A DNA stretch of 64,000 nucleotides from Octopus sinensis (lineage: Eukaryota), in the NCBI RefSeq assembly GCF_006345805.1, contig NW_021833265.1, positions 1-64,000 on the forward strand. Direction: 5' to 3'. This document shows positions 13,736 through 64,000 of the stretch, one piece after another; the stretch's first letter is position 1; every line of letters begins with the position of its first letter. A model generated the notes under the pieces. That model ran no database searches and had not been told where the DNA came from. It saw only the letters and a list, made by a program, of their open reading frames with translations. The position numbers and the translations under genes were made by a program.

Positions 13736-15283
13736 TCCCCCCCAAAAAACAAAAACACTATTCTCTTCTAAACAAAACCCCCAAAATATCTGTTTTATAT
13801 AAATGAACAAGCTGTTTGGACATTCACAAAATTGTATTTGACAAGTTCGAGAGAGAGAGGAACGAAATAAAAGAATTTTTTTTCCAAAATTCTGACTTTT
13901 TCTTTACATATATATATATATATATATATATATATATAATATATAATATATATATATATATATAATATATATATATATATATATATATATTATATATATA
14001 TATACATATATATACATATACAAACACATACATGCATACATACATACATACATACATATATACATACATACACATACACACACATACACACACACACAAA
14101 CACACATATATATATGTATATATATATATATATATATATTATATATATATATATATATATATATATATATATATATATAGCACAAAACGGCGGTGCATCA
14201 GCATGGCCGCAGCTCTGAGCTGAAACTAGAAAAAATATATATATGTATGTATGTATATATATACATGTGCATATGTATTTATATATATATATATATATAT
14301 ATATGCACATACAACATATATATACGTATATATATATATATACATGCATGCATATATATATATATATATATATATATATATATATATATATATAGATAGA
14401 TATATATGATATGTATATATATATATATATTATGCATGAATAAAAATATCTTTGGATGCATTTCATTTGAGAGGTTTGCATTTAATTTTAATTTCTTATA
14501 TGTATATGAATATTTTATTGGATCAGTTAATGTCTGGAGAATGTGTTGTGTACATTGTTTCGCTGTGATTCTTTACAGTATGTGTTGTGTAAAATGTAAA
14601 TATTTTATTGGTCGGTGATTATATAGGGAACTATTTGAGATGTACGGCTAAATTGAAAGTGTCTTGCGTACCACGTGGGCCAGGTTTAACTGGATCATCT
14701 TTTGAACTGAGAATATCGTTGATATGGCTTTTACTTGTACTTCAGTCATATCGTTTTCAAATTCATACCTGATTCTTGTTCATTTTAAATTCATGGATCG
14801 TGAATATTGACAGTTTCCACATCTCTCACCAGGAAATGTTTTTGCAAAAAGTAATTGCGATATCAATCTGAGTACAAATATTATTGTTTCATTCTTTGAT
14901 AAATTTATCCTTGTACGATTCTTTTTGATATCTTTGTCTGTCATTTCCCCGATTGTGGTCAGGTGGTTATTATGTATCGTCTTTGATGTTTTATCCCTCC
15001 TAACCGTTCTTGTCTCCAAATGATGGTACATGATCCAGTGGACATAGATTCCTTCTAAGAACATAATTGGGTTTGACAAGGAATGGATCAGCAGTAAGAA
15101 TGTGGTCAACTCTCGCATTATATTTTTATGGTGATGATGTGGTGGTGGTCATCGTCGTATTTATTATCGAATTATGCATATAACACTTCTCTTTCTTAAT
15201 CTTTTCGTCTTTAATGTTTGTAAATTAATGCTAAACGTGGACATGGAATATAAAATATTTTACAAAATAAATTTTCGTTGCAG

Positions 15284-15319
15284 TTCTCTTCTACATCTCA
15301 TTGACATTTGGAAATGGAC
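15284..15319 (+). CDS. PAN gene A: 36-nt phase 1-1 exon, C-terminal half of a signal peptide (xLFYISLTFGNG)
   Basis: ttttcgttgcAG acceptor and GTGAGT donor. Identical in arm B. The phase-1 frame is open, hydrophobic and compatible with the next exon. Confidence 0.6.
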
Positions 15320-15869
15320 GTGAGTAGATTTATATCAATATATAGACCTATATCTATAAACATTATAAAAATCACAGCGCAAAATTGTAATTTATAAGTT
15401 CAGTATAGGAAAATATTTTCCTTCTCAGAGTAAATTAGTTGAAAAGAAAATTTAAAATTCTAAGTTCAAGATAAAACCGCCGAATAATGACGAATTCAAT
15501 TCTGAACATATTTTCATTTCGTCAGTGTTTCGTCAGTTTCTAAGCATTTTGTTAAATTTGACAAAGTGCTGATACTGGGGCAAACTTTACAATGCACAAC
15601 CGCTGAACATTATAGAACATAACATATGAGTCATTTAAATATGAGAATTAAACAACTTTAAAAACTCATATTTATTAAACAGATAATATATTCCAAGATG
15701 CCTTGTACCTACACTATGGTAGTAACAACTTTATCACTTCTTCCTAGTAAACATACCGATGTTGATCGTCAAACATTTAATATTCTCTTTCTTTATATTA
15801 TATATTTTCACAATATTTTATTTACGTCTTCCTATTTGGGTTGTTTAATTTGCCTGGCTTTTGTTACAG

Positions 15870-16127
15870 TTGAATATCTGACGTATTTTATAAAAGTACA
15901 ACACTGTGATCTGAAAGATGCTAAAACATTGATGACACTTGATGTGGATGACTTCAACTGTTCGAAGAATTGTTTTGAAACTTCTGCATGTAAATCCTTC
16001 GTGAGCAGAACGATAAGCCCAAGATGTATTTTATACGAAGATGACTCAACAGAGAAAATTCTAACAATGGAAAATAATGCCTATTTTTATCAGTTGAGAA
16101 GAACTGTGCCGACCAAGTATAGAGACG
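15870..16127 (+). CDS. PAN gene A: PAN/Apple-like domain exon 1
   Basis: ttgttacAG / GTAAAC boundaries, 258 nt, phase 1-1. EYLTYFIKVQHC..NCSKNCFETSACKSFVSRTISPRCILY has the C-x3-C-x5-C-x-S-F..C-x-L pattern. Same length and boundaries as arm B. Confidence 0.8.
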
Positions 16128-16904
16128 GTAAACAAATTTGAATCTTCTGGGTTTATTTTATTCCTTGACTTGTATTCTGTGTTTTAGTCCAAAGAGAGAC
16201 AATACTGTCGGCATTTGAAAAGTCTCTACGATTTCTCTGGTCAATGTAGAATGGTGTCTGTGGATAAAAAATTGTTTGTAGAGTTTTCGTTTCAGAGAGT
16301 GAAAGTTCTAATAAAGGTTTGATTGATGCGCTTAGCATAGATTTTGGGATTGAGACACAAGATTACCAAGGAGAAAAGAGAAAAGGCAACGTTTTGTCAA
16401 AAGGTTGTGTGTTTAGGTTTTTGTCACGTGACTGTCAGTGAATATTCTCAATATCTTTGATGATGAAAATAATGCATGTCTGGGGTGTAATATCTAAATT
16501 GTGTGTAGATGACATTAGTCTGTGAGGGAGACGAAAAGATATCTTACACTATATGAGGATATGATACCAGTTTTACTTAAATTACGTAAAATAATTACAG
16601 AAGATTAACTGAATGTGTGAAACACAGATTTAATTTTTTTCACGTAGAAAATGAAGAAATTTGGAACCAAATTGGGTAACTCATCCATAAACGAATGAAA
16701 ATCCTAAAACTGGATCAAATCAAAATATTCACAATTCTGATCACCTTTCTTTCTTTCTTCTTCTTCTTCTTTCTTTCTATCTTCTTCTTCTTCTTCTTCC
16801 ATCTCTTTTCTCTCGCTTGCTTTATTTTTCAGATGAAAATCAAGCACGTTTATTATTTTGTAGTTCCCTGTGCGCCAAGCTTTCAGAGATGTGTTAGTAA
16901 GTTA

Positions 16905-61457: not shown

Positions 61458-61715
61458 CGTCTGTATAATTGGTCGGCACAGATCTTCTCAACTGATAAAA
61501 ATCGGTATTAGTTGCGCCTATTAGCATTTTCTCTGTTGCGTCATCTTTGTATAAAATACAGCTTGGACTTATCGTTCTGCTCACGAAGGATTTACATGCA
61601 GAAGATTCAAAACACCTCTTCGAACAGTCGTAGGCATCCACATCAAGTGTCATCAATGTTTTACCTTCCTTGAGAAGACAGTTTCCTACTTTTATAAAAT
61701 AGTTCAGATGTTCAA
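61458..61715 (-). CDS. PAN gene B: PAN/Apple-like domain exon 1
   Basis: ttgttacAG / GTAAAA boundaries, 258 nt, phase 1-1, open. All five Cys are conserved with arm A. Confidence 0.82.
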
Positions 61716-62448
61716 CTGTAACAAAGTCAGGAAAATTAAACAACCAAAGTACGAAGACGAAAATAAAAGATTTTCGAAATAGATAATATAAAGAGAGAGA
61801 ATATTAAATGTTTGACGATCAATACTGATATTTTTACCAGGAAGAAGTGATAAATTTGTTACTACCATAATGTAGGGATAATTAATCCATTCTATTATTT
61901 AAATGATTCATATGATATGTTCTGTAATGTTTTATGCTTGTGTATTGTAAAGTTTGCCCGATTATCAGAACTTAATTTTAATAAAATGCCTACAAACTGA
62001 CGAAAAACTGAAATACAACGAGTACGAAGAGCTTACTTTCAGAACCACATCTATGCCTCTGAATGGCTTTTGAGTAATTGTTAATAGCAACAACTTGAAT
62101 ATATCTGATTTTGACTGGAATACTAAGATTCGCCTCCTGTCTATGTAACATCTATCCCAGTTTGACTGAAAAAAATTTCACGTGCGTGAAATTACAGATT
62201 GTATTTTAATGGTTATCATGAAACCGACCAAAGATGCACTTATATTGGTTTTGAAAGTAACTCCTTATTATGTTAAGAATTGAATTCACCATCATACGGC
62301 TGTTTCGTATTGAACTAAAAATTATAAATTTTCTTTTCAACAAATTTATTTTGAGATGGAACATATTTTCCTATACTGAACTTATAAATTAAATTTTTGC
62401 ATTCTGATTTTTCATAATTTTCATAGATATTAATATAAATCTACTCAC

Positions 62449-62484
62449 GTCCATTTCCAAATGTCAATGAGATGTAGAAGAGAA
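62449..62484 (-). CDS. PAN gene B: 36-nt signal-peptide exon
   Basis: Identical to 15284-15319, including both splice sites. Confidence 0.6.
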
Positions 62485-64000
62485 CTGCAACGAAAATTTA
62501 TTTTGTAAAATATTTTATATTCCATGTCCACGTTTAACATTAATTTACAAACATTAAAGACGAAAAGATTAAGAAAGAGAAGTGTTATATGCATAATTCG
62601 ATAATAAATACGACGATGACCACCACCACATCACCATAAAAATATAATGCGAGAGTTGACCACATTCTTTCTGCTGATCCATTCCTTGTCAAACCCAATT
62701 ATGTTCTTAGAAAGGAATCTATGTCCACTGGATCATGTACCATCATTTGGAGACAAGAACGGTTAGGAAGGGATAAAACATCAAAGACGATACATAATAA
62801 CCACCTGACCACAATCGGGGAAATGACAGACAAAGATATCAAAAAGAAATCGTACAAGGATAAATTTATCAAAGAATGAAACAATAATATTTGTACTCAG
62901 ATTGATATCGCAATTACTTTTTGCAAAAACATTTCCTGGTGAGAGATGTGGAAACTGTCAATATTCACGATCCATGAATTTAAAATGAACAAGAATCAGG
63001 TATGAATTTGAAAACGATATGACTGAAGTACAAGATAAAAGCCATATCAACGATATTCTCAGTTCAAAAGATGATCCAGTTAAAGCCGGCCCACATGGTA
63101 CGCAAGACACTTTCAATTTAGCCGTACATCTCAAATAGTTCCCTATATAATCACCGACCAATAAAATATTTACATTTTACACAACACATACTGTAAAGAA
63201 TCACAGCGAAACAATGTAACACAACACATTCTCCAGACATTAACTGATCCAATAAAATAAACAAAATATATTCATAAATATATGCGAGAAAATAAAATTT
63301 AAAGAAAATTTGAAGAGAAACTATCTAATGAAATACAACCCAAAATATTTATTCATGCATAAACAATATATATACACACACATATATAAATACACACACA
63401 CACACACACATATATATAATTTATTTGTATATTCATGTCTCTCTCTATATATATATACATATATACATACATACATACATACATATATACATACATACAT
63501 GCATGCATACATACATACATACATACATACATACATACATACATACATACATACATACATACATACATATATATATATACAGATATATAATTCAGTGTAC
63601 ATTTATACACAAACGAAGTGACCCTAGCAGGACACCATACACGCTAAAAGGAGCAGTCAAAGCCCAAACCACGGTTAAGAGTAATTTCGAAGGGAATGAA
63701 AAATAAAAACATTTTCAATAGTTAGCACTATATATATATATATATATATATTATATATATATATATATATATATATATATATATATATATATATATATGT
63801 ACACATAAAATACAACACACACAATATAATATATATACATGCATGTATATAATAAATGAAAACAGAAGATGGAATATACAAAGATATATTATTAATCACA
63901 ACAATTGTTTCGACATATCTAGCATCGACTCCCTGTGTGTGTATATATAAAAATACACAACACACATTAATAGTAATGGTAAGACAGCAAAAGAATGAAA

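Follow-up and report, generated by a model that had tools for sequence, protein, structure and literature searches.

The 64,000-nucleotide stretch of Octopus sinensis DNA analysed here (the window) covers positions 1 to 64,000 of the unplaced RefSeq scaffold NW_021833265.1, which is 78,196 bp long in total and is referred to below as C9736. It carries two paralogous genes in convergent, tail-to-tail orientation, one on the forward strand (arm A) and one on the reverse strand (arm B), both predicted to encode small secreted proteins composed of three PAN modules. On the evidence presented below, we consider it probable that these are two members of an octopod-restricted, tandemly arrayed family of secreted triple-PAN proteins, for which we infer a diversified role in recognition.

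Each gene consists of six coding exons, and every junction in arm A and arm B is phase 1. Two tiny exons encode the signal peptide, PAN1 and PAN2 are encoded by one exon each, and PAN3 is divided between two. In arm A, exon 0 (2657-2687, forward strand) supplies the ATG and the first 10 codons of the signal peptide, MLQRNCLQVI, and ends at the phase-1 donor GTATGT. It was located by a pattern search with the N-termini of annotated paralogs and agrees with their MLxRNCLQxIF start; the annotated relatives begin MLxRNCLQxIF-LFYISLTFGNG. Exon 1 (15284-15319; 36 nt), which encodes the remainder of the signal peptide, LFYISLTFGNG, and is 100% identical to its arm B copy, is followed on the same strand by exon 2 (15870-16127; 258 nt; PAN1), exon 3 (22893-23119; 227 nt, with a 1-nt deletion near 22911; PAN2), exon 3b (31136-31222; 87 nt, LLNNFSQSHTLKDISSVGCAFGSYYFVN; the linker, first strand and first Cys of PAN3) and exon 4 (31919-32109; 191 nt; the PAN3 core and a TGA stop). 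An AATAAA polyadenylation signal lies at 32212-32217, about 105 nt past the stop.

Arm B mirrors this order on the reverse strand. Its exon 0 (ATG, MLERNCLQII) lies beyond the end of the window, at 64728-64758 of the scaffold, and is followed by exon 1 (62449-62484; 36 nt; second half of the signal peptide), exon 2 (61458-61715; 258 nt; PAN1), exon 3 (47801-48031; 231 nt; PAN2, the hypervariable module), exon 3b (42658-42753; 96 nt, LWNDFRQSHTLEKINSVGCGVRVLDSYYFVE; AG/GT ends, phase 1) and exon 4 (41850-42040; PAN3 core and stop), with AATAAA at 41729-41734, again about 105 nt past the stop. Intron 0 measures 12.6 kb in arm A versus 2.2 kb in arm B.

Eight of these exons, namely exons 1 to 4 of each arm without exon 3b, had been listed in an initial annotation made from the sequence of the window. 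All eight lie exactly where it placed them, bounded by an AG acceptor and a GT donor and joined in phase 1; about 20 paralogs at other places in the genome share these exon boundaries, and the succession of stop and AATAAA was borne out in both arms. The resulting model, a single frame of about 240 residues, was incomplete: two exons per gene, the ATG-bearing exon 0 and exon 3b, had been overlooked. The putative first exons (15284-15319 and 62449-62484) have an acceptor and no ATG, the start exon of arm A being 12.6 kb upstream and outside the range that the initial annotation covered. Exon 1 is preceded by an ATG at 15243, which was rejected as the start codon because it cannot be read in frame with exon 2. 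The single frame holds for arm B, where the four listed exons join into an open frame of 237 residues ending in TGA, and not for arm A, which shifts frame in exon 3. The complete products comprise 276 residues for arm A (read from an intact copy on another scaffold, C9508) and 280 for arm B, and are 71% identical to each other.

Exon 3b sits between exons 3 and 4 and has AG/GT ends and phase-1 boundaries in both arms. Most annotated members of the family have it, among them the Argonauta homolog and the XP models P0003, P0064 and P0065; it is absent from the annotated paralog P0005. It encodes a nearly invariant Cys and, according to the structure model described below, the beta-strand with which PAN3 begins. 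Because every exon is phase 1-1, the frame survives the skipping of exon 3b, and a shorter product of this kind is a possible minor isoform, not the canonical form.

The two genes had also been described as hidden from annotation, which is true of only one of them. Arm B is already annotated on the same scaffold as XP_036355407.1 / LOC118761516 (353 aa, P0064). That NCBI model uses arm B exons 1, 2, 3 and 3b and most of exon 4, including a Leu variant specific to this scaffold. By tblastn, it has an alternative 5' coding exon at 63193-63246 (reverse strand), a further alternative 5' exon at 67316-67384 of the scaffold, and an alternative last coding exon at 39131-39322 (reverse strand; 100% match), which lies in the inverted 3' flank and is spliced from an internal GT in exon 4. 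Both types of alternative exon have mirror copies in arm A, at 14524-14576 and 35992-36057. Near-identical copies of arm B on other scaffolds are annotated as LOC118761543, LOC118761475 and LOC118761469. For arm A, no scaffold copy has a protein record, and the best recorded protein is only 75% identical, over part of the length. Many paralogs are labelled "uncharacterized protein" or "Apple domain-containing protein", and a literature search found no paper mentioning the octopod triple-PAN family, queries for PAN domains in molluscs yielding general background only. Arm A is new and arm B already catalogued. The domain is of a known kind, and the lineage-specific family to which both genes belong is uncharacterised. 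An exon of 36 nt, a start exon of 31 nt at a distance of 12.6 kb and introns swollen by transposons lead automatic pipelines to odd or missing models.

The locus is present in at least four overlapping assembly copies (C9736, C9921, C9508 and C9518), and the redundant scaffolds are either haplotigs or over-assembly copies. C9921 and C9508 are 99.3-100% identical to the window and show the same layout of both genes. Over window positions 1-48574 (48.6 kb), the identity to C9508 is 99.46%; the alignment has 100 mismatches and opens 118 gaps, as expected of indel errors in long reads or of haplotype noise. Exon 3 of arm A reads GGATATGTT in the window versus GGATATTGTT (228 nt) on C9921 and C9508; being one base short, the window copy shifts frame after GKCPLD. 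The redundant scaffolds that carry the base at 22911, which are 99.5% identical to the window, give an intact open reading frame (ORF) for arm A, and on C9508 its six exons form an uninterrupted ORF of 276 residues with all splice sites, 12 core Cys, the stop and the AATAAA. There are four exon differences between the window and C9508 (15933, 22911, 41873 and 41980), and all of them change the protein. Besides the frameshift, these are a Met/Thr difference at 15933 and two substitutions in arm B: base 41873 gives Ser in the window at the last core Cys of PAN3, where the redundant scaffolds have Cys, and base 41980 gives Leu in the window and His in the redundant scaffolds. For annotation practice, it is of note that redundant scaffolds of the O. 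sinensis assembly differ at protein-changing positions.

These differences bear on an alternative to which we assign a rather low probability, namely that arm A is a decaying pseudogene and arm B the sole functional gene at the locus. Such decay would agree with the exon 3 frameshift in the window, with the lack of an annotated arm A protein on any redundant scaffold, with the replacement of residues that are invariant among annotated paralogs (P, F and Y of xPNCQSFDY, and W of LWNDF), and with the excess of nonsynonymous over synonymous differences per site (pN > pS) between arms A and B in exons 2 and 4. However, exon 3 is intact on both C9508 and C9921, the former with the uninterrupted ORF; the 118 gap openings fit sequencing error or haplotype noise; and raised pN/pS is a property of the whole family, not of arm A specifically.

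The domain content of the proteins was examined in the arm B spliced product, in which Pfam detects PAN_1 (PF00024) over three stretches with E=5.5e-14 and 52.2 bits, against a gathering cut-off of 21.4, along with PAN_2 (37.7 versus 21.1) and PAN_4 (33.1 versus 27). No other Pfam family matches. The core C-x3-C-x5-C...C is present in all three modules of arm A and in PAN1 and PAN2 of arm B; in PAN3 of arm B, the fourth position is Ser in this window. An extra N-terminal Cys is nearly invariant across the wider family in PAN2 (C111) and PAN3 (C205), and variable in PAN1 (C35); C111 and C205 may pair with each other. In the apple subclass of PAN domains, typified by factor XI (FXI) and prekallikrein, a third disulfide joins the first and sixth Cys at the N- and C-termini of the module. 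No module of the octopus proteins has a Cys beyond the fourth of the core, and this N-to-C disulfide is absent. Because the sixth Cys and the N-to-C disulfide pair are missing, the modules are PAN domains of the HGF/plasminogen N-domain kind and not true apple domains, and the UniProt label "Apple domain-containing" is a loose one. The PAN/Apple assignment of the initial annotation is thereby narrowed: the PAN core and the three modules stand, and membership in the apple subclass does not.

The N-terminus has the features of a cleavable signal peptide: charged residues at the start, then a hydrophobic core of 14 residues, then G-N-G (M-L-x-R-N + core + G-N-G). Downstream of it the proteins contain neither a further hydrophobic segment nor a C-terminal anchor signal, and the mature products are basic and about 29 kDa in size. 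A secreted, soluble protein is a reasonable reading of these sequence features. Both the Pfam results and the hydrophobicity profile agree with the earlier view that the proteins contain three PAN modules only, with no transmembrane or catalytic domain.

An AlphaFold2 model was made for an annotated paralog, P0002 (LOC118766713), which is 71% identical to arm B, using an alignment of 16 sequences. It has a mean predicted local distance difference test score (pLDDT) of 78 and consists of three helix-on-sheet units, each with the order E-E-H-E-E-E, a PAN-like fold; in the N-terminal part of PAN3, encoded by exon 3b, pLDDT is only 51-64. A Foldseek comparison of this model with the Protein Data Bank (PDB) retrieved, with probability 1.0, the apple domains of prekallikrein and FXI, SML-2, TgMIC4 and the HGF N domain; the plasminogen N domain was retrieved as well. 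A sequence-profile search of the PDB recovered the same proteins weakly, together with leech antiplatelet protein (LAPP).

The best structural matches of the P0002 model are the apple domains of FXI and prekallikrein (6i44, 7qox and 5eok; Foldseek E 1e-8 to 7e-7), which likewise form tandem PAN-type modules with a C-x3-C-x5-C...C core. Unlike these proteins, the octopus proteins lack the sixth Cys, possess three rather than four modules and have no protease domain; sequence identity is about 15%, and no disc arrangement is evident (TM score 0.26). Also among the matches are SML-2 of Sarcocystis muris and MIC4 of Toxoplasma (2yil and 4a5v; Foldseek hits 9-14, profile hits with E 1e-4), which, like the octopus proteins, are small secreted proteins consisting of tandem PAN/apple modules only. 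The PAN/apple modules of such apicomplexan microneme lectins bind galactose-type glycans. The likeness is at the level of the fold, between unrelated lineages at about 15% identity, and sugar binding is a feature of the apicomplexan proteins. The N-terminal PAN domains of HGF and plasminogen (3hn4 and 4dur) share with the octopus modules the four-Cys core without the third apple disulfide and superimpose on single domains of the P0002 model with a root-mean-square deviation of 1.3-2.7 A over 76-86 residues. In HGF and plasminogen, however, PAN is one module of a kringle/protease protein, whereas it is the only domain type of the octopus proteins. LAPP (1i8n) is likewise a small secreted invertebrate protein containing only PAN, with a single domain and marginal sequence similarity (E=0.032). 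LAPP binds collagen and is secreted by the salivary gland, and apple domains have been characterised as protein-binding surfaces, with kininogen, FIX and heparin binding (PMC7191736). The salivary origin is a feature of LAPP itself.

The closest relatives of the window genes are proteins of other octopods. When 1.84 billion representative proteins were scanned in full with HMMER, only 43 were hit at E<=1e-3; the sources of 20 new hits were looked up, ten earlier hits being already named Octopus. Among the hits with sources looked up, all those with E<1e-15 come from O. sinensis, O. bimaculoides, O. vulgaris and Argonauta hians, and a multi-repeat oomycete protein (P0018) falls right at this cut-off (E=1.0e-15). 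At weaker scores, a cnidarian, a rotifer and the same oomycete contributed PAN proteins of a generic kind, and no squid or cuttlefish protein appeared in the scan. The annotated paralogs LOC118766713, LOC118766705 and LOC118761468 of O. sinensis, LOC106868906 of O. bimaculoides and Ahia01_000849900 of A. hians occupy different loci and, at lengths of 276-282 aa, share the signal peptide, the three PAN modules, the arrangement of exons and the pattern of Cys. The Octopus paralogs among them are 60-72% identical to the window genes; the Argonauta protein, with the same architecture, is 36% identical. Sequence comparison thus indicates that close relatives are restricted to octopods, and the suggestion of a lineage-specific family in the initial annotation gains support. 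Distant relatives of these small proteins include giant secreted-type proteins of O. sinensis, O. bimaculoides and O. vulgaris (P0014, P0015, P0020 and P0022) with up to 21 PAN_1 modules and Sushi repeats.

The tail-to-tail arrangement is accompanied by inverted homology well beyond the exons. Six collinear inverted blocks, about 7.4 kb in total, align between the arms at 75-94% identity, far above chance: 14235-15510 with 62269-63576 (88%), 15522-16866 with 60677-62011 (84%), 22843-23408 with 47549-48081 (75%), 29221-29816 with 45017-45615 (94%), 30961-32477 with 41440-42926 (76%) and, in the 3' flanks, 34019-36057 with 39257-41340 (81%). A seventh block, found by blastn, joins the promoter-proximal region and first exon of arm A (2318-2863, forward strand) to scaffold positions 64557-65075 (75%). 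The centre of symmetry is a spacer of about 3.2 kb (36058-39256). In scaffold coordinates, the inverted structure spans about 2318 to 65075, or roughly 62 kb, with both genes wholly inside. Only about one third of each arm can be aligned, the rest being lineage-specific insertion.

The initial annotation had recognised a palindrome of about 49 kb (14432-63360); the inverted collinear homology is real, and its extent is greater. The palindrome is not, however, a special structure, and is better described as an old inverted pair of diverged paralogs in a tandem array of mixed orientation. Ampliconic palindromes maintained by arm-to-arm gene conversion have long, near-identical arms (typically >99%) and a short spacer, and the present arms, at 75-94% identity over about one third of their length, lack that near-identity. 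Three further relationships were considered and rejected: a larger mirror structure taking in the neighbouring genes U and X is unsupported by the exon trees; the exon trees likewise disagree with arms A and B being mutual closest relatives throughout; and a paralog on C29 does not represent the chromosomal placement of the locus, being 83-91% identical and devoid of a PAN2 exon.

An inverted arrangement on an unplaced scaffold, in a region that at least four redundant scaffolds represent, also raises the question of an assembly artefact, either a chimeric or fold-back long read or mis-joined haplotigs. Fold-back artefacts produce near-identical arms. Here the arms differ by 6-25%, with unlike intron lengths and transposon content, and the two genes differ at about 30% of residues; the separately assembled scaffolds C9921 and C9508 show the same layout; and further tail-to-tail pairs of the family lie on the chromosome-scale C17. 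A fold-back is excluded because the arms have diverged and C9921 and C9508 share the layout, and the artefact explanation as a whole, which we regard as highly improbable, is already close to refuted. The arrangement would instead derive from an old inverted duplication at the DNA level that took in introns and flanks, followed by independent transposon insertions and patchy gene conversion.

One of the inverted blocks coincides with a dispersed 596-bp repeat in intron 3 of arm A (29221-29816), with its mirror copy at 45017-45615. The mirror copies are 94% identical to each other versus at most 82% to about 35 other genomic copies, in surroundings where the arms are 75-81% identical. The repeat occupies the same relative place in both arms, and therefore the duplication copied an intron that already held the element; judging from its high identity, this patch may since have undergone local gene conversion between the arms.

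Other repeats account for the inflated introns noted in the initial annotation, as retroelements were identified in intron 0 of arm A and intron 2 of arm B. The former contains two RVT_1 retroelement fragments in opposite orientation, at 6401-8221 (reverse) and 10276-11542 (forward), and the latter a retroelement with RVT_1 and zf-RVT at 55714-58565 (reverse). The two RVT_1 fragments are flanked by a 97.4%-identical inverted repeat (5317-5940 and 11794-12418), and 5317-12418 is a small, young palindrome of retroelement origin. Long microsatellites occur at 2215-2442, 4650-4915, 13908-14430, 21736-22500, 50861-51097 and 63447-63577; three of them consist of (TA)n, one is a 765-bp (TCT)n, one an (ATT)79 of 98% purity and one an (ATAC)n. 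The best-conserved block has at its mirrored outer edges the (AT)n of 13908-14430 and the (ATAC)n of 63447-63577. No tRNA genes were found in the window.

A six-frame search of the genome assembly (2.72 Gb, 13,516 contigs) gave at least 149 exon hits for the family. Among these are at least 39 hits for the PAN1 exon, 16 of them on C17 (59,356,462 bp), 2 on C29 and the rest on unplaced scaffolds. On C17, the PAN1 hits cluster at 12.88-12.99, 14.49 and 21.68-22.03 Mb, in mixed orientation. Many unplaced hits duplicate placed loci, and we estimate that the family comprises about 25 distinct genes. Further tail-to-tail pairs are found on C17 at 21.844(+)/21.893(-) and 21.914(+)/21.941(-) Mb, and the arrangement in the window is one instance of a recurring pattern.

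Some paralogs have unusual exon complements. Two tandem last exons, each encoding the PAN3 core with an AG acceptor and its own stop, lie about 0.76 kb apart at C17:21754417-21755369 (L065/L066) and C17:21951272-21952226 (L072/L073); they could be alternative terminal exons or partial duplications. The paralog at C29:415000-437000 (L077-L079) has exons 2, 3b and 4, and no PAN2 exon was detectable in it. The protein sequence of its PAN1 exon is 98% identical to that of arm B, and its introns match those of arm B in parts at 93-95%.

We compared 20 copies of each PAN exon, each with 150-nt flanks. Splice sites are shared by all compared copies, and open frames and all core Cys are kept in all except two (L063 and L074), which have an internal stop or frameshift. 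The three modules differ in their divergence, measured as mean pairwise amino acid identity, Jukes-Cantor (JC) distance, pN/pS over six phylogenetically independent sister pairs, and maximum-likelihood omega under the GY+F3X4 model. PAN1 (exon 2) has an identity of 0.77, JC distances of 0.10-0.16 in the exon and its intron flanks, a pN/pS of 0.89 and an omega of 1.26. The PAN3 core (exon 4) has an identity of 0.83, JC distances of 0.10-0.16, a pN/pS of 0.60 and an omega of 0.65. For PAN2 (exon 3), identity is 0.49 and JC distance 0.44-0.60, with a pN/pS of 2.09 (Fisher p=0.025) and an omega of 1.14. Hypermutation specific to the PAN2 exon was considered and rejected, as exon 3 and the intron sequence on either side of it have diverged to the same extent and the contrast is regional. 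The exon trees differ as well: the PAN2 tree unites A, B and the upstream neighbour U in one clade, while the PAN1 tree places A with U and B with the C29 paralog. From these sequence comparisons, it appears most likely that the ends of the genes have been homogenised by gene conversion and the middle left, or kept, divergent. Values of omega near or above 1 across exons with strictly conserved Cys and core motifs suggest positive selection on a subset of sites.

By analogy with PAN modules elsewhere, the secreted proteins would act as extracellular binders. PAN1 and PAN3, kept alike by gene conversion, might provide a constant scaffold or a site for a common partner, and PAN2 would be the variable, specificity-determining module that binds a ligand, which may be a protein or a glycan as in other PAN/apple proteins. 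The family as a whole would then constitute a diversified repertoire for extracellular recognition.

A different function is conceivable, to which we assign a rather low probability: the proteins may be structural components of extracellular matrix, cuticle, mucus or egg coat, with PAN2 varying through weak constraint. Many nematode PAN proteins are bulk extracellular components, and the giant octopus PAN and Sushi proteins look matrix-like. Outside the four-Cys cores, the Cys are odd in number and might form links between chains, and relaxed constraint accounts for an omega near 1 no less well than diversifying selection does. Against weak constraint stand the significant excess of nonsynonymous change between PAN2 sister pairs, the retention of Cys and core motifs, and open frames in nearly all copies; moreover, homogenised ends around a divergent middle are, as a general rule, typical of repertoires selected for diversity.

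Several points weigh against our preferred interpretation of the pair as two genes of a secreted recognition family. Transcription of the genes and the exon junctions of arm A are predictions from sequence, and the NCBI model of arm B has first and last exons other than those of the six-exon model, skipping the canonical ATG exon. The fold was predicted for the paralog P0002 and not for the spliced proteins of the window. In the window, both genes carry potentially damaging changes, the frameshift in arm A and the Ser for the last PAN3 core Cys in arm B, and arm A has replaced three PAN2 residues, the P, F and Y of xPNCQSFDY, that are invariant in the annotated paralogs. The omega values are averaged over exons and derive from short alignments, gene conversion is evident in the family, and relaxed constraint is an alternative under which omega near 1 is equally expected.

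The strongest version of the recognition reading deserves separate mention, and we advance it only tentatively, as a speculative possibility. The family may be a true diversity-generating repertoire in which constant PAN1 and PAN3 frames enclose a PAN2 cassette under positive selection, serving the recognition of non-self, microbial, gamete or prey molecules, and which is an octopod invention without a squid or other molluscan counterpart.

The domain type, the mode of growth of the gene family and the inverted arrangement are all of well-known kinds. To our knowledge, cephalopods lack adaptive immunity, and the recognition molecules that they secrete are poorly known. Against this background, a tandem, fast-evolving, octopod-only family of about 25 genes with a hypervariable middle module is a reasonable candidate for a role in recognition, reproduction or feeding.

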